DNA of 42,394 bases from Ministeria vibrans ATCC 50519 (Eukaryota > Protista > Filasterea), in NCBI GenBank assembly GCA_943704425.1, contig CALSCP010002675.1:1-42394 (forward strand), given 5' to 3'. A program made the position numbers and the translations under genes. Positions 7,056 to 19,090 of this stretch are shown one piece after another. The notes below the pieces were generated by a model. The model was not told the origin of the DNA and searched no databases. It saw nothing but the letters and a program-made list of their open reading frames with translations. Every line of letters begins with the position of its first letter. Position 1 is the stretch's first letter.

Positions 7056-8833
7056 ATGCCACACGAAGAGCCCCAGCGTCTCATCCAACACTTTGTGGGC
7101 GGTGGCCTTGCCGGGTAGGGCTTCTCTGACTTTGTCCTGTGCTGTTGTATCGGGCAAGCGTCAGTCGTTGTGTGATCGGCCAGTCTCACTTCAATCTGCC
7201 ATTCCCGTTCCGTTTGCAATCGCATTGACTTGTTCCTCTCCTCCCACTGTGCATCGTTGCCACCGTCACCATAGTGTCACGCGTTTTGTCGTGGCCGTGT
7301 GCAGCCCCCGAAGGGCGCTGGTCTCGCGATGGCAGCCGCTGCGATCGCCACGGCCCTTCACTGATGGGCTGTCGACTGTCGCCTGACTAAACCCACCTCC
7401 CACCTTTAGCGTCACCGCCAAGACTGTCATTGCCCCTCTCGATCGTGTAAAAATCCTCTACCAAGTCACTCCCGACCGGAAGTTCTCCATTATGGTAAGG
7501 AGCAGACACAGAAGAGCGAAAGGGCCATAAAAAAACGTGTTTTTCGCAGAGAGCCATTGTCTCCATTCACAATTGCTACCAGGCGGAGGGATTGGCAGCG
7601 CTGTGGCGAGGCAACATGGCAACAGTGCTGCGGGTCTTTCCCTATGCTGGGCTCAATTTCATGGCACACGAACGATACAAACAGGTTTGAAAGAGCGAGA
7701 GAGAGAGAGGCAGAGAGAGACTCAGTCTTGAACGGTGTTGCTTGACGAGACGTTTGTTGTCTTTGCTGTTGTCGTCATTCTCAGCTACTTCTTCCCGCCA
7801 ACGCAACGGACCTGTCCAATGTCCGAAGGTTCATATCAGGCTCGCTGGCCGGCGTGACTGCGAGTGCACTAACTTACCCACTCGATCTGCTGCGGGCGCG
7901 AATGGCTGTGCAAATCCAGCGCAAGAAATACAGCGGTACGAATTGAAAGAGCAAGAGAGCGAGAGTAAGGTGAGACAACAGTGAAGCTAATGGAACACGT
8001 ACAGGGCTTCTTCAAGCGTCCTCTGCACTGTACAATGAGACGGGAGTGCGCTCGCTCTTCCGCGGACTCACTCCGTCTCTCCTGGGAATGATTCCCTACG
8101 CGGGCTTCTCCTTCTTCACCTTTGAGACGCTCAAACGGAAGCTCAGAGAGAGTAGGTTATATTATGTGTTTGTGTATACCTCTAGTGAGGTCGAACGTGC
8201 GTGGTTGTGTGTCGATTTCGTGTGCTCACTTAGGTTTCAATATGTAGGATCGCCCACCAACACAGTTGAAGGGTGGCAGTTGCCCTTCTGTGGTGCACTC
8301 GCGGGCGTCACCGCTCAGGTGAGAGTATTTCTGGTCTTCTTCCTAGCTTAACACTTAGCTTCTCGCTTTCTGTCTTTGTAGTTCTCGTCCTATCCACTGG
8401 ATGTTGTTCGCCGTCGCATGCAGACTGATGGCTTTCTCTCGGGCTTTCCCACTGCGTCAGTCGCATCCGCATCCACTGCCACAGCCACGCCTACAACAAC
8501 CATCCGTCCCAAGCCACTGTACACCTCCACCCTGCAAACTCTTACAGTACGCACCACGAACACACCAAAAAGTGCCCACCAAGCACACACTCACTGTCAC
8601 TCTACTCTCTTTCACTTAATTCTCTCTCTATCACTTTTTTTCTTTTCCTTCTCTCACACTATTCACTCTCACTCACACACACACACTCTTAGACCATCTA
8701 CCGCAACGAGGGTTTTGCCAATGGGCTCTACCGTGGCATCACCCTTAACTTTGTCAAGGGACCCATTGCCGTTGGTATTAGCTTTACTGCCTTTGACTAT
8801 TGGAAACGTCTTCTCGGCACAAACGACATTTGA
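7056..8833 (+). CDS. Mitochondrial carrier, SLC25A42/SLC25A16-like (CoA transporter subfamily)
   Basis: Exon 1 7056-7114 ([20 protein letters not shown]) splices to 7410 ([19 protein letters not shown]). Later exons give [44 protein letters not shown] and [11 protein letters not shown]. The last exon ends [21 protein letters not shown]...NDI* (TGA 8831-8833). Three Px[DE]xx[KR] carrier repeats. Confidence 0.9.
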
Positions 8834-8912
8834 CCCATCTCCTCTCGCTGTGAGCCTTTTACTTTGTACCATCCACAGACAGAATTGTACTTTAATATAA
8901 CGCCAACAAAAA

Positions 8913-9006
8913 TTAATAATAATAATAATAATATAATCATAATAATAATACTCATAATATAATAATAATAATAATAATAATAATAGTAATAATAGTAATA
9001 ATAATA
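8913..9006. repeat. (AAT)n microsatellite between convergent genes
   Basis: Imperfect AAT run. Confidence 0.85.
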
Positions 9007-9019
9007 AACGTAGTACAAA

Positions 9020-9934
9020 TCAGTGAGCTATGAGACGACTGAGAGGAAGACGGCCGTGAAAAACGGTCTGAGCGGCGCCGGTCATGCGCACACTGGCCCC
9101 GTCTATCCCCGCCCACTCCACGTGCAGCACTCCCCCGTCCAGCACGACGCTCGCGCGCACAGAGTTCGGCAAAACGTGTGCAATCAACCCACGACGCACT
9201 GCTCCCACCACCGCAGCACACGCCCCACTCCCACACGCCTCTGTCCGCCCTGCGCCCCGCTCCCACACGCGAAAGCGCAGGTGCACTCCTGTCCCATCCA
9301 TCTTCGCCTCTACCTCGGCGGCACTCATCACACGCGCGAAACCCACGTTTACACCCTCGGGGAACAGCACTCGGTCACCACCAATGAGTCTCCCCAGTCG
9401 CTCCACCTCGGCATCGCCCCACTCCTCGTCCCCAAACAGCGTCACATGTGGGTTGCCCATGCTCACGGCCGACCCAATCCACCCGCTGCGCAAAGGTACC
9501 CGGCTAGTGTCCGCCTGCTCCACTCCCAACGGCACCCGGCGCCAGTGTGTCTCGGGCGCTCCCATGTCCACTGCCACTGCCATGGAGCCGTCGGCAAGCG
9601 CGGTGCGTCGCAGTGCCTCCCGCAGACCCGCCACCGTCTCCACAACAACTCTTTCTTTGCCCGTTGCGCGCATCACCAGCGCCGCCACGCAGCGCGTCCC
9701 ATTGCCACACGCCTCCGCACGCGTTCCATCGCTATTCACAATGCTCATAAACACGTCCGCACGCGCATCGCGTCGCTCGCTCATCAACAGTACTTGGTCA
9801 CACCCAATGCCGCGTCGTCGGTCTGCCACAAACCGACTCCCTTGTGTCGTCAAAAGCGACGGATCAAGGTTTAGCGGACGCAAGTCAATCACCACAAAGT
9901 CATTGCCGAGTCCATTCATCTTCACAAACCCAAT
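9020..9934 (-). CDS. dapF: Diaminopimelate epimerase domain (C-terminal half of a METTL22-DapF fusion ORF)
   Basis: Motifs FVKMNGLGNDFVVID, GIGCDQ, NSDGTRAEACGNGTRC (catalytic Cys1), VSMGNPH, FPEGVNVGF, RVWERGAGRTEACGSGACA (catalytic Cys2), MTGAAQTVFHG. Intronless and in frame with the upstream methyltransferase exon (ORF 9020-10381). Confidence 0.95.
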   Translation of the reverse strand: MGFVKMNGLGNDFVVIDLRPLNLDPSLLTTQGSRFVADRRRGIGCDQVLLMSERRDARADVFMSIVNSDGTRAEACGNGTRCVAALVMRATGKERVVVETVAGLREALRRTALADGSMAVAVDMGAPETHWRRVPLGVEQADTSRVPLRSGWIGSAVSMGNPHVTLFGDEEWGDAEVERLGRLIGGDRVLFPEGVNVGFARVMSAAEVEAKMDGTGVHLRFRVWERGAGRTEACGSGACAAVVGAVRRGLIAHVLPNSVRASVVLDGGVLHVEWAGIDGASVRMTGAAQTVFHGRLPLSRLIAH

Positions 9935-11040
9935 CTCCTCCTCCTCCCCCTCCTCCTCGTCCTCCTCTTCTTCTTCTTCTGCTCGAGCAAGAAGTCCCTG
10001 GCTCTTCTGACGCCCCATTTCTTCGTCATGATGAGACCGCTTTCGTTTCCGCTCACGACGCGCAAAGGTCCACAGCTCCATGTCTGTCGCAGAGCGACGC
10101 TCGTGCATTTCACCTACTACACGCACAGGTACACGTGCAAGCAGCGACGCTCCCTTGTCAACGTGCCACTCAATCAAGTGAGACGCAGCCTCGAGCGCCG
10201 CCAGGAGATTCTCGCGCGCCGGGCAAACCACTCGCAAATGCTCAATGGTGATGTTCACGCGTCGCTCTAGTGTTAGCACAAAGCGCACGGTGGGAAAGGT
10301 CGAGAGAACGCGCTTGATAAAGCTCACTAGCGCGTATGTCAATTCTCGGTCGTACACCACTGTTCGCACACACACACACACACAGAAACAAAAACAACAA
10401 AAAATGAATGTTATTGTTGTTTTCGTTGCGGTCAGTACGCAGTCAGTTGCTTACCGTCAGCGGCAATAAAAAGAGGCGCCTCGGAAAAGCGCGTGAGATC
10501 GTCGAGGTCTTGAAACGTCCAAAAGAAGTCCTGGCGCCCCGACTGACTGTCCATGAAGAGCGGGTTGAGCAGCGGCGTGTCGGAGCGCCAGTCGAGTGCA
10601 CGAACGCGCACTCGCTCGCCAGCGGCCGTCGCGCAGTTGCGTCGGCAGTTCTCGAGTACGTCATCGCCATGGTCGGTGCAGAAGACGAGCGGCGCGCCTG
10701 CGTACGCCGCCACCAGGGAGCACAGGCCGGTGCCCGCGCCCAGTTCGATGATGGGTGTGTCCTTGCGAACATGCCCCGACGCAACGAGCCAGTCCGCCAG
10801 CAGCAGAGCCCCTCTCCACACCTGTAGCCCGACCGTTTCCAACGGTGTTGCAACCGCGTGCGCTATCGCAAAGGAGGTGTACGCGTGCGCTGGCACTCCC
10901 TTTCGCGGCGGACACAGGTCGCCGTCGCCGTCGACCACAGCTTCCCGGTACACGCGAAACACACTTGATTTTGTTCCGGCCGGCGTGTTCACGTGGACGT
11001 CAGACACGATCGAGTCTGGTGGCTCATTTGCATTCGCCAT
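9935..11040 (-). CDS. METTL22: METTL22-like protein-lysine methyltransferase domain plus basic/acidic linker (N-terminal half of the fusion ORF)
   Basis: Exon 11040-10455 has IVSDVH, DGDGDL, HAVATPLETVGLQVWRGALLLAD, IELGAGTG and VRALDW. Intron 10454-10360 (GTAAG...CAG) rebuilds AADVVYD. Exon 2 continues LERRVN...MELW and has no stop before DapF. Confidence 0.88.
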
Positions 11041-11134
11041 TACAGCAAAAACAATGATAGTTAATGATCAATTCAAGTTTCAAAGGGGAGTGACGAGTTT
11101 CAAGTTTCAACAGCCTTTTTTTGATTCGTTTCTG

Positions 11135-11397
11135 ATGTCGAACGTTCGTGTTCACATTGTGCCGCACGACCAGGATGAAGACGAGTCGGATCCGTACCAG
11201 GAGATGATAGAGCGCACGGGATGCGCCAAAGAGCTAGAGGTGTGGCGTGGAGTGGATGAGAGTGTTGAGTTCACACGTTTGCGTAGAAAATGAACGAATG
11301 CTATGCAGATCGGAAGGATTGGCGAGTGTGCGCGCCCCAGGCGAAGGCTTTTCGAGCGTGCTTTGAAAAGCATCAGCGCGAAAGGGCAAAGGAGTGA
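11135..11397 (+). CDS. COA4: Cytochrome c oxidase assembly factor 4 (twin CX9C IMS protein)
   Basis: Exons 11135-11239 and 11287-11397 (47-nt intron): ...DESDPYQEMIERTGCAKELE|KMNECYADRKDWRVCAPQAKAFRACFEKH...*. Two CX9C motifs with TGC and DWRxC signatures. Confidence 0.88.
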
Positions 11398-11449
11398 GGC
11401 TTGTTGCGTACACTCACTCTATTGTAATTGTAATATGTTTTGTGTTCGT

Positions 11450-12730
11450 TCATTGCTGTGCTTCCCAAGCGAGCCGGTAGGGCGCCATGTCCATGCCCAG
11501 TGGCTCGTAGCGTGCACTGACCGCACCAAGAGTCTTTTCTGTCCAGTAGCTGTGTCCTGGGGCAGGGAAGCCCAGTGCGCTCCTCTGCTGCACAGTGGCG
11601 CCCGCTACGAATCGCTCAAAGTACCCTTCGGGCGAGAGCATCTTGCGAGCAGAGCCGGTGTTCCAGTGGTTGAGCCAGTCGGTGTTGGCGCGCTTGAACA
11701 CCAGGTTGTGCACGTAGCGCACGCCGCCCTCCTTGAGGGGCGTCCCGCGGTGCCATGCGTCGTGTCGGTAGAAGAGCACGGTGCCTCGCCCATACTTGAC
11801 ATACCGCTCCCGCTCGTACAGCTGTGCCCGATGCGCATGAGTCTCGGGATCCTACACAAAACGCAAACGCACATTGAGTTCGTTCATGATTTCAACGTGA
11901 GTACCTCCTTGGCAAAGTACGCCTCGACGGCGTCGCGATCGTTCTGAAAGGGCACTGCGCCAAAGCCAGGCAGTTGCGAAATGGGGTAGGCGTAGAGGGG
12001 GTCGTCGTCACCGGTGCGCGGCACGACGGCCGTTGCACCGCCTGCATCTGAGGGGCGGGTGCGTGCGTGAGTGACTGGCCAAATGTGTAAAAGTTACCTT
12101 CGACATTCGAATAGTAGATAATCATGGCAACAGCTTCGGGCTGATCAAATGGCGGTGGATGGACCAGCGTATGGTTAAGGTAGTCGCAGTGGATACGCTG
12201 GTTTCGGTTGTCCTGAGGTCCATAGGGCTCTGCGACAATCAATGTTAGGTGCACTGCGTATAAACAACAACCCAAGCAACAGCAACCGTCGTACTCGCCG
12301 TGTACACCTTGCGCCACGCATCAGACTGCGTCAGACGGATATCGGATGTGCCCAAGAGCTGTTCGCATGCGTCGAGGACCCGTGGATGCAGTGTAATGTC
12401 GTTGAGCGACGCAATTCGCGATGGGAACTCACACTGGCCATTCGATCCAAAATCTTGCTGAAACACGAAAATCAAAGACACTTCTGATTGTGACACGCCC
12501 GGCAGGGAAAACCGTACCTTTCCCTCAAACTCCACATCGAGAGCGTCGGTGGCGTCGGCAATCACCTTCTCGAGGAAGTCGGTCGGAAAGAGCCCTTCGA
12601 CGACACAGGCGCCCTTGACGCGCCAGTCCGACACTTGCTGCTCCGTCAGTGGCAGCGCGGCAGTGCTGGGTGTTGCTTCGCTTGACTCGAGGTACTTAGA
12701 CATGAGAGTGATACAATTTAAATCTGACAT
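11450..12730 (-). CDS. Phytanoyl-CoA dioxygenase (PhyH)-like 2OG-Fe(II) dioxygenase
   Basis: About 5 exons. Motifs LTEQQVSDWRVKGACVVEGLF, HPRVLDACEQLLG, IHCD (HxD), GGATAVVP and GTVLFYRHDAWHRG (distal His). The start could be 12730 or 12703. Confidence 0.8.
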
Positions 12731-17009: not shown

Positions 17010-18856
17010 CTACAGTTCTGTGCTTCTCGATGTGTCGTCTCCATGGTGCAGCGTCATCTGAGCGGTGAGCCAGGCCAAGAGAGGTGCGCGGTGCACAGTG
17101 GCATGGGCGAATTCGGTGAGAAAATCTTCAAGCAGATGGTGCTCGCTGAGCGGGCGCAGTGCGTGCGGGGAGTACATGCGCACCACCGGATGGAGAAAGT
17201 TGCTGTGCTCTGCGCGCATCGCATCGCCCTCGGCTCGTCCACTGCGCAGCGTGTCGTCGCCTGCCCCTCCAAAGTGTGCTCCGTACTCGAGCGACAGTGT
17301 TAGATGACCTTCGGGGGCGTGCACTCCGTCACACCGCTCCTCCTCAGTGTACTCCAGTATCCTTCCCTGCCACCGCACCACATCGCACAGCTCCCCAAAC
17401 ATTTGATACAACCCACTAGACTCCATCGCTCGCAGCAACATAACATCGGCCAATTCCGCTGCTTGGGTCACCCTGCGACTGGGCCACTCCTTCAAAAACA
17501 CTAACAATTTGTTATGCATACGATTAGGGCTTTTTGTGGTGATCACCTGTTCGGTACCAGGCACGCGTGAGATAGCGAAAGCCATGAACAAAGCCACCGG
17601 ACGAGCGCCGGTGGTCGTGTGCGTGCATGAGCGCACCCACAAAGTACAGTCCGGGGACATTGATGCTCTCGTATGAGCGCGTCAGAGCCGGCAGTCGACC
17701 TCGCGCACTCCCGCTCTGCGCCATGACCGGACGACACGACTCGTCGAAAAGGTGCGTGTCCATGGCAAATCCAAGACACCGAATCACATGGTCATAATGG
17801 GAGCGCAGCGGCCAGTTCTCCGGTAGTGCCGCACCCATTGTGTGTGTGGGAACGACGCTCACGGTGTCGTTGTCGCGGCGCTCGAGTCGGAGCACATCAA
17901 ACGACGCAAGCTCCGTGATGCCGTCGAGTGACTTGAGCTGGTACGCATCAAGCAATTCCAAATTGACAGCACGCACGTCGCCCACATAATGCGTTTGAAA
18001 GGCCAGGCGCACGCGTGAACGCCCGAGAATGTGTGTCACAGCCGTGTGTTGATGAAGCTTGTTCGCCAGCTCAAACGCACTGTTACCCGCGCCCAACAGC
18101 AGCACACGAGATCCTTCAAAGCGTTCTGCCGACAAGTCGACGGTCGAGTAGGGCTGCGACAGGACCGCAAATCCCGCGTGTAGTTCCGAAGGAAAGTGTT
18201 CGACGGCAAGACCGGTTGCGACGACGACTTTGTCACAGCGATACGTTAGCGAGGCGTTGGTGTGAACGTGAAACAGGAAGGCTTCAGACGACGCATCCGC
18301 GGCATCGCCACGGGCGCGTCGTTCAATGTGGGTCACGGTGGTTGCATAGCGAATGCGATGCGCCAAGTGCGAGCACGCCACAGCCTGCACATAGGCGGCC
18401 AGGTCGTCGGCAGCGGGATAGTAGGCTGTCGAGAAGGACTGCATCTTCAGCGGGGTGTGCAACAGCGAGTGCCAGTCGTGCCGCAGGTTAAACTCAGTGC
18501 AATTCCGTTCACGGGCTAACCCTGGCCCTGGCCCTGGCCCTGCGCCGACAGAGGCACAGCCGGTGTGTCGCTTGTTGATTGAGATGAGTTTTCGATCGCG
18601 CGGCAACCTTGAAAAGGTGCTGCCCGCTACCGCATCCCTTTCAAGCACCACAAACTCATGGCTGTCCTGTTGTAACAGCAGCGCTGCCTGTACACCGGCA
18701 GGACCGCTGCAAAGACGATTAGAAGCTCCAGGACGGACAGACCCTTTTCGTCTCGTACGCTCCAACGATGCACGTCGGCACATCTTCAAAAGCCGCATTG
18801 GCAACACCGTGTCCCAGTACAAATGTGCACAGCAGAATGCAGCAAGCCAATCGCAT
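17010..18856 (-). CDS. FOXRED2: FAD-dependent oxidoreductase domain-containing protein 2-like (ER flavoprotein)
   Basis: Exons 18856-18759 (signal peptide MRLACCILLCTFVLG...CIVGA), 18706-17547 and 17500-17010. Motifs GAGPAG, PRDRKLISINKRHTG, EFNLRHDWHSLL, LGAGNSAFE, THYVGDVRAVN, LDAYQLKSLDG, SSGGFVHGFRY, SNFLHPVVR and HLLEDF. C-terminal STEL resembles a KDEL-type signal. Confidence 0.9.
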
Positions 18857-19090
18857 CGCAAAAAAAAAAAAGTTTTTCCTCTGAGTGATCAGCGATGATT
18901 TAGAAGATGAATGAAAGCGACAGCATAAAGACTAATCCATATTAAAAATTAATAATAAGAATAAGAATAACGTCATTATTGATTTATTAATAGTCTAAAT
19001 TAGTTTTTTTTTTTGGCTTTGAGTACAGCTCCCTTATCTCTATTCTATAATTATATTTCTTCATAATAAAATAATAAAGACAAAACGTTT

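Follow-up and report, generated by a model that had tools for sequence, protein, structure and literature searches.

A METTL22-type methyltransferase gene that reads in frame into a bacterial-type diaminopimelate epimerase in Ministeria vibrans

A single gene in the genome of Ministeria vibrans ATCC 50519, a single-celled marine relative of animals, encodes a 641-residue fusion protein in which a METTL22-type methyltransferase is followed by a complete diaminopimelate epimerase (DapF). The gene lies on the minus strand, from 11040 to 9020, of the 42,394-nucleotide stretch of contig CALSCP010002675.1 (assembly GCA_943704425.1) that was analyzed here; this whole stretch is referred to as the window, and all coordinates without a contig name are positions in it. 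We consider it probable that the gene is a real, expressed chimera produced by horizontal gene transfer (HGT), in which METTL22 came to be read through in frame into dapF, that the two halves act independently, and that the DapF half serves, together with LysA, in the salvage of diaminopimelate (DAP).

The gene consists of two exons and one spliceosomal intron. Exon 1 (11040 to 10455) begins with an ATG that is preceded, 30 nt upstream, by an in-frame TGA, and it encodes the N-terminal 195 codons, plus 1 nt, of the methyltransferase, ending in AAD. The intron (10454 to 10360) is 95 nt long, follows the GT..AG rule (GTAAGC...AACAG), and has a GC content of 40% versus 57 to 63% in the exons. It interrupts codon 196 after the G of GTG, and splicing completes the sequence AADVVYD. 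Exon 2 (10359 to 9020) opens with the C-terminal third of the methyltransferase (10359 to 10067), which runs from VVYD to MELWT with no stop after it. A linker follows (10066 to 9935) that contains a basic cluster, RRERKRKR (10060 to 10037), an ATG at 10018, and an acidic Glu/Asp tract (9979 to 9935) encoded by a GAG/GAA repeat. The remainder is a complete DapF domain (9934 to 9023), with its catalytic cysteine codons at 9709 to 9707 and 9235 to 9233, and the exon includes the TGA stop at 9022 to 9020. When the two exons were joined, a script count yielded 1926 nt, 641 codons, and 0 internal stops, with Methyltransf_16, the basic cluster, the acidic tract, and the complete DapF arranged in this order. 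Approximately 295 N-terminal residues belong to METTL22 and approximately 305 C-terminal residues to DapF, and both sides of the junction are held in the single 453-codon open frame of exon 2. A first-pass annotation of this DNA, made from the letters alone, had described the gene in the same way, and its exon boundaries, length, and frame were all reproduced. So were the restoration of the AADVVYD motif by the single intron, the passage of exon 2 from the end of the methyltransferase through a linker of about 45 residues into a complete DapF with both catalytic cysteines, and the location of the fusion point within one exon.

To evaluate expression, sequencing reads were considered over window positions 7600 to 12600, using the RNA-like runs X1 and X3, both of a 2025 study, and X5, of a 2011 study, together with the DNA run X12. 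The introns of neighboring genes were all missing in the RNA-like runs and all kept in X12, a pattern that identifies X1, X3, and X5 as RNA and X12 as DNA. The fusion-gene intron was likewise gone from the contigs of X1, X3, and X5, that is, in both studies, and retained in X12. The intron joint was read from contig pieces, as it is missing from the joint table of the read layout. In the contigs of all three RNA-like runs, two letters separate 10357 and 10455, as expected for exons that end at 10359 and 10455, and the depth of the intron bin falls by the expected fraction. Continuity of RNA across the fusion junction, which the first-pass annotation had put forward as a check, is provided by X1 record 2. 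This single contig of 1,981 nt covers 11038 to 10455, 10357 to 9993, and 9922 to 9015, and it thus spans 11038 to 9015 through the linker. In the masked GAG/GAA repeat (9992 to 9923), the record has 70 letters, the same number as the window, and the frame is therefore preserved across the junction. Depth is uniform across the junction in the X1 contig. Neither insertions nor deletions were reported in X1, X3, X5, or X12.

It is hardly credible that the fusion is an artefact of mis-assembly, of bacterial contamination, or of misreading two genes as one. Short-read assemblies (X3 and X12) do break at the simple repeat in the junction. However, the RNA-like contig crosses this repeat at the length found in the window, the DNA contigs of X12 overlap inside it, one 453-codon frame holds both sides, and the neighbors are spliced eukaryotic genes.

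Part of the transcript data weighs against the read-through chimera. The continuity derives from assembled contigs and not from single molecules, and in X1 record 3 two overlapping transcripts from opposite strands were merged into one, so contigs can join two RNAs. The 5' ends of the RNA-like contigs lie at 11038 (X1) and 11029 (X3), with no 5' untranslated region (UTR) captured. The X3 contigs break in the GAG repeat, with a depth of 62.7 on the DapF side versus 40.2 on the methyltransferase side, and X5 displays the same trend (approximately 7 versus 2 to 3.5). The fusion protein itself is predicted, and its enzyme activity is deduced from sequence. Continuity of the RNA contigs across the junction is, hence, good but not final evidence. 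The deeper DapF side could be due to 3' bias or to an additional, DapF-only transcript. If the latter applied, DapF might be made mainly as a separate protein of approximately 330 residues, from an internal transcription start upstream of the ATG at 10018, and the fusion would be incidental to the loss of the METTL22 stop. This ATG is in frame and lies 28 codons ahead of the DapF homology, and the depth differences in X3 and X5 point the same way. We nevertheless regard a mainly separate DapF as unlikely. X1 yields a single contig with even depth over the junction, and the region upstream codes for METTL22 and offers neither a spacer nor an AT-rich, promoter-like stretch. The depth gradient is as expected from 3' bias, and a METTL22 that lacks a stop would still be translated through DapF. 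With regard to a transcription start near 10018 in the absence of read-through, a possibility named in the first-pass annotation, the X1 contig documents read-through; an internal start giving an additional DapF-only transcript stands as a rival.

Searches and profile scans were made exon by exon, and those of the genome used a fragmented assembly of 2,860 contigs. In exon 1, the Pfam family Methyltransf_16 (PF10294) was matched over residues 68 to 155 with 43.3 bits (cut-off, 21), and motif I for binding of S-adenosylmethionine (SAM), ELGAGTG, is encoded at 10746 to 10726. The named homologs of exon 1 are all METTL22 proteins, from a priapulid, a sponge, a tick, a coral, many insects, cladocerans, and one plant. 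Exon 1 is 43% identical to residues 59 to 208 of the tick METTL22, ending at its LAAD, and the start of exon 2 is 35% identical to residues 210 to 263, beginning with VYD. ELGAGTG, CTD, and the DxxY motif formed at the splice (AADVVYD) are present and aligned with the tick protein. Since the alignment continues across the intron, the METTL22 domain is complete and colinear, with the intron inside it. Five further family-16 loci are present in the genome, six in total. A sponge METTL22 searched against the genome matched the fusion gene with 83 bits and the paralogs with 36, 29, and 28. By reciprocal best hit, the methyltransferase half is a METTL22 ortholog, and the fusion gene is apparently the sole METTL22 of the genome. 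No stop codon interrupts its METTL22 frame ahead of 9020, so that METTL22 can be produced from this gene only with DapF attached. METTL22 is a seven-beta-strand protein-lysine methyltransferase of animals and plants that methylates KIN17 in humans, and a gene with the KIN17 winged-helix domain is present on contig C899.

A metagenome scaffold of 1,231 nt (SCHR19-1_SAMN09406036, here L026) corresponds to window positions 11590 to 10371 with 98.6% identity. It differs from exon 1 at three sites, each of them a third codon position, and at 10316 in exon 2, RNA and DNA differ synonymously. Strains or samples thus differ at four coding sites, all in the methyltransferase half (4/4) and all at third codon positions (4/4). 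In this tiny sample, the restriction to synonymous differences fits purifying selection on that half. The scaffold stops in the intron and carries no information on the junction. An apparent 11-nt insertion at its ATG was rejected, as it proved to be a 10-N scaffold gap. This gap is located exactly at the start codon, near the ends of the RNA contigs. The scaffold also shows that the organism with the fusion gene, or a near strain, is present in an environmental metagenome sample.

DapF converts LL-diaminopimelate to meso-diaminopimelate, and the second half of the protein bears the features of this enzyme. Exon 2 contains the two repeats of DAP_epimerase (PF01678; 131.1 bits in Pfam) and matches the NCBIfam equivalog TIGR00652 for DapF with 196.9 bits (cut-off, 114.65) over model positions 2 to 268 of 270. 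Both Cys-Gly motifs are kept, as ACGNG and ACGSG; the catalytic cysteines of DapF are Cys73 and Cys217 in Haemophilus numbering. Compared with 14 alphaproteobacterial-type DapFs, to which it is 50 to 56% identical, the fusion DapF has three small insertions and retains all of the 70-odd invariant columns, including N12, Q48, N68, C77, N79, N162, N197, E226, R227, and C235. The best true DapF among known structures, PDB 8qzy, was aligned at residues 6 to 276 of 278 (E-value of 5e-42, 147.5 bits). An alignment-based model reached a predicted local distance difference test score (pLDDT) of 83.5 and a predicted template modeling score (pTM) of 0.83, and its best PDB matches were DapFs (E-value of 1e-27; template modeling [TM] score of 0.75 to 0.85). 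As judged from sequence, the DapF half is complete and catalytically intact, and it is the sole DapF in the 29.7-Mb assembly.

A further point that counts against our interpretation is the score of an O-ureidoserine racemase, PDB 7vdy, which reached 143.5 bits versus 147.5 for 8qzy. With 7vdy so near, the DAP specificity of the fusion DapF is putative. It might be argued that this half is no longer a DAP epimerase and has turned into a racemase for another amino acid, comparable to O-ureidoserine racemase, or into an inactive relic. The closeness of 7vdy, the long branch of the domain in the tree described below, its three insertions relative to bacterial DapFs, and a remaining DAP pathway that is missing from the assembly would all agree with such a change. 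We consider it highly improbable, as the cut-off of the DapF equivalog is exceeded by 80 bits and every invariant column is intact, including both Cys-Gly motifs and the Asn, Gln, and Glu-Arg positions. Furthermore, the domain groups with housekeeping DapFs in the tree, and LysA, the consumer of the DapF product, has been retained.

To assess the origin of the DapF half, exon 2 was compared with 5.8 billion proteins, which gave 7,963 matches. The top 120 of these were bacterial DapFs of approximately 277 aa with 46 to 53% identity. Stellaceae, Caulobacteraceae, Micavibrio, and Acetobacteraceae were named among these 120, and they included no eukaryotic and no longer protein. In a quick maximum-likelihood tree with 80 bacterial sequences from named genomes, the fusion DapF was placed among alphaproteobacterial-type DapFs, outside a well-supported clade of gamma, beta, and Clostridia sequences. 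Against this placement, it should be noted that the fusion DapF sits on a long branch (0.95), that its position as sister to Micavibrio has a value of only 85 in the Shimodaira-Hasegawa-like approximate likelihood ratio test (SH-aLRT), unstarred, and that eukaryotic DapFs are absent from the tree, which consequently indicates the type and not the donor. The DapF part of the gene is intronless. The GC content at third codon positions (GC3) is 0.67 for DapF and 0.73 and 0.64 for the two methyltransferase parts, and with a value so similar to that of the host, the transfer was probably not very recent. On these sequence comparisons, the DapF half is of alphaproteobacterial type and of bacterial origin. 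Bacterial contamination was considered and rejected because the neighbors on either side are spliced eukaryotic genes, the 42-kb window also contains UTP25, INTS7, MIF4G, and Cep192-type genes, and the GC3 is host-like. The first-pass annotation had offered two interpretations, one of which, a horizontally acquired gene captured under the promoter of a host gene, fits these results: the DapF is of alphaproteobacterial type and intronless, the host contributes the sole promoter-proximal exon, and METTL22 is without a stop.

The pair of METTL22 and DapF was not encountered elsewhere. An exhaustive HMMER search of 1.84 billion representatives with exon 1 returned one fragment with 100% identity and a next match of 116 bits, and a DapF was present in none of the 10 longest exon 1 matches. 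With a 202-residue query across the junction, no match covered more than 36%; junction peptides found nothing in metagenomes, and an Atlas search gave plain DapF clusters only. No homolog covering the linker was detected with either the junction query or the junction peptides in metagenomes. In the literature, no paper was found that joins diaminopimelate epimerase with METTL22, and nothing relevant for Filasterea or Ministeria. The pair is thus apparently new with respect to the proteins, metagenomes, and literature reached. An architecture that is already widespread, which the first-pass annotation had listed as grounds for refutation, did not emerge from the proteins or metagenomes. A 566-aa protein of another organism (P0263) consists of GINS PSF1/Sld5 domains followed by a METTL22-like Methyltransf_16 domain. 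Either a member of this methyltransferase family has been fused to an unrelated partner here as well, or the gene model is a merged one.

Genes in which a single reading frame combines intervals from the host with intervals acquired horizontally have been termed HGT-chimeras (Kapoor et al., PNAS 2026, PMC13389597). In arthropods, 104 independent origins were recorded, and 81 of the 104 clusters occurred in one species only (PMC13389597). An earlier screen, as cited there, listed 37 HGT-chimeras from 11 unicellular species, and HGT combined with domain fusion is on record for oomycetes (PMC2705460). The gene studied here has the same makeup, with METTL22 and DapF intervals in one open reading frame of 641 codons, one host and one bacterial, and, at contig level, a contiguous chimeric RNA over both; like most of the arthropod cases, it is known from a single species so far. 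It differs in that it belongs to a unicellular relative of animals and not to an arthropod, in that the pair of domains was found nowhere else, and in that the only host copy bears the foreign part, with no duplicate-then-fuse route evident. Relative to bacterial DapF (EC 5.1.1.7; PDB 8qzy, 4ijz, and 1bwz), the fusion shares the two repeats, both cysteines, and the predicted fold (TM score up to 0.85). Unlike the bacterial enzyme, it is encoded by a eukaryotic nuclear gene, has lost its own start codon, carries an N-terminal extension of 337 residues and three small insertions, and is found without the rest of the DAP pathway. The methyltransferase half resembles other METTL22 proteins in its reciprocal best hits, its Methyltransf_16 domain, SAM motif I, DxxY, and colinearity to the C terminus, but it has no stop and continues into DapF.

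We propose that dapF arrived from a bacterium and was integrated immediately downstream of METTL22, with both genes oriented alike, and that the METTL22 stop, together with the frame-breaking sequence of the spacer, was then lost, so that one frame resulted. By read-through, dapF would have come under a host promoter and acquired a start codon along with a 5' part that contains an intron. The low-complexity basic and acidic linker may be a remnant of the remodeled former spacer. The two halves would act independently of each other. The methyltransferase half would keep the ordinary role of METTL22, the KIN17 gene being present, and the DapF half would convert LL-diaminopimelate to the meso form, which the separately encoded LysA would then turn into lysine. 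The source of diaminopimelate would be the walls of eaten bacteria and not de novo synthesis. The RRERKRKR cluster resembles a nuclear localization signal; if it is functional, DapF would enter the nucleus along with METTL22, where it should still work, as its substrates are small and diffusible.

The other interpretation in the first-pass annotation was functional coupling between a lysine-biosynthesis enzyme and a lysine-modifying enzyme. In this "Rosetta stone" scenario, DapF would act as a sensor or binding site for diaminopimelate or lysine and thereby tune the methyltransferase, or it would direct the latter to new substrates, so that lysine methylation would be tied to lysine supply. 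Lysine is a theme common to both halves, both look intact, and the fusion is the only METTL22 of the genome. Coupling nonetheless appears improbable. As the architecture was found in no relative, conservation offers no argument for selection on the combination, and the linker is of low complexity and unique. Moreover, the substrate of one enzyme is a free amino acid, whereas that of the other is a protein side chain, and HGT-chimeras whose parts are unrelated are common (PMC13389597). The idea thus found no support. A specific and quite speculative version, to which we attach very little weight, is that binding of diaminopimelate or lysine by the DapF domain gates a nuclear METTL22, so that wall material from prey would be read as methylation of KIN17 or of another nuclear protein. 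If this were true, the gene would represent a metabolite-sensing methyltransferase made from a stolen enzyme.

Returning to two halves that act independently, the contribution of DapF depends on which other steps of lysine synthesis the genome encodes. Profiles for dapA (TIGR00674) and dapB (TIGR00036) had no match in the assembly. With the corresponding Pfam families, one weak match of 30 bits was obtained for PF00701 (DHDPS) and none for PF05173 (DapB_C). For DapL, which leads from tetrahydrodipicolinate to LL-DAP, the best score of TIGR03542 in the assembly was 34.8 bits, compared with a cut-off of 364.7, and dapD and dapE were not searched for. By contrast with these, lysA was found on contig C32 (47755 to 48997) in at least two exons (TIGR01048, 113 and 84 bits), with the DAP decarboxylase 7jpj as its best PDB match (192 bits). 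A decarboxylase on contig C2643 was rejected as lysA, since it is an ornithine decarboxylase. Apart from dapF, lysA is the only DAP-pathway gene that was found. De novo synthesis through the DAP pathway was therefore rejected, with dapA, dapB, and DapL undetected in the fragmented assembly, and the DAP lysine pathway implied by the first-pass annotation was not supported beyond lysA. An alpha-aminoadipate reductase of the LYS2 type is distributed over two contigs, C1204 (17467 to 20286; 440, 288, and 162 bits) and C528 (11106 to 12385; 250 bits). Homoaconitase was not evident in the assembly (74 bits), and despite the strong match to the reductase a full aminoadipate route is not established by these profile scores.

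Since DapF and LysA are the last two steps of the DAP pathway and the only ones found, salvage from bacterial prey is likelier than de novo lysine synthesis. The fusion DapF probably helps to convert bacterial cell-wall diaminopimelate to lysine, as the analogous systems below suggest. Two considerations detract from this view. The absence of dapA and dapB rests on a fragmented assembly of 2,860 contigs, and most bacterial peptidoglycan already contains meso-DAP, the direct substrate of LysA. Because prey peptidoglycan is mostly in the meso form, DapF would add access to the LL form only, and the benefit for salvage would be modest.

Similar partial pathways have been described. Trypanosomatids possess LysA only, to which Herpetomonas adds DapF; these enzymes come from bacteria, and DAP can replace lysine for growth; LysA also occurs in Capsaspora and Dictyostelium (PMC3846528). 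Like these trypanosomatids, M. vibrans is a eukaryote with only the last one or two enzymes of the DAP pathway that could use external DAP for lysine. Their enzymes stand alone, however, and their DAP nutrition was shown experimentally, whereas here DapF is fused and the use of DAP is predicted. In the choanoflagellates Salpingoeca rosetta and Monosiga brevicollis, dapF is an HGT candidate that is accompanied by asd and lysAC, with no mention of a fusion (PMC7971027). M. vibrans and choanoflagellates, both of them unicellular and closely related to animals, thus have a bacterial-type dapF in common, but choanoflagellates hold further DAP-pathway genes (asd and lysAC). No choanoflagellate protein was among the best 120 of the 7,963 exon 2 matches, which suggests that the acquisition in M. 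vibrans may have been separate from that in choanoflagellates.

The fusion constitutes a clean, transcript-supported case of a bacterial gene that is expressed, with no promoter of its own, by being joined in frame to the 3' end of a gene already resident in the host. The class of HGT-chimeras, recently described from arthropods, is extended by this gene to a relative of animals that is unicellular. The gene further suggests that a bacterivorous relative of animals may regain lysine from the diaminopimelate of its prey with DapF and LysA alone, which bears on lysine nutrition in the lineage that gave rise to animals and in which the synthesis of lysine was lost. Current views are not overturned, and the fusion, having been seen in one species, may be limited to it.

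The fusion gene is closely flanked on both sides. Upstream, the contig of a plus-strand neighbor has an adapter-tagged end at 11136. With this transcript start and the fusion-gene ATG at 11040, approximately 95 bp (11041 to 11135) are left for a divergent promoter region. X1 record 3 covers 11136 to 11850, with a plus-strand GT..AG intron at 11238 to 11284, and continues with minus-strand introns from 11850 on. Downstream, a convergent plus-strand neighbor (7782 to 8900) has four introns, and a microsatellite of approximately 110 bp, (ATT)n/(TAA)n, occupies 8901 to 9014 between the 3' ends of the two genes. X1 record 2 reaches 52 letters beyond 9015, giving a 3' untranslated end at 9019 to 8963 that enters this shared microsatellite, and the neighbor contig reaches 85 letters beyond 8900. 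As the contigs of both genes enter the microsatellite, their 3' UTRs may overlap. Elsewhere in the window, 2 kb between 5000 and 7000 have a GC content of 26 to 31%, in comparison to 50 to 62% in the remainder. On the minus strand, an intronless frame of 445 codons (17527 to 18861) matches Pyr_redox_3 with 82.8 bits and, weakly, Lys/Orn N-oxygenase, both of which are families of flavin monooxygenases. It could be a second bacterial-type gene in this intron-rich neighborhood.

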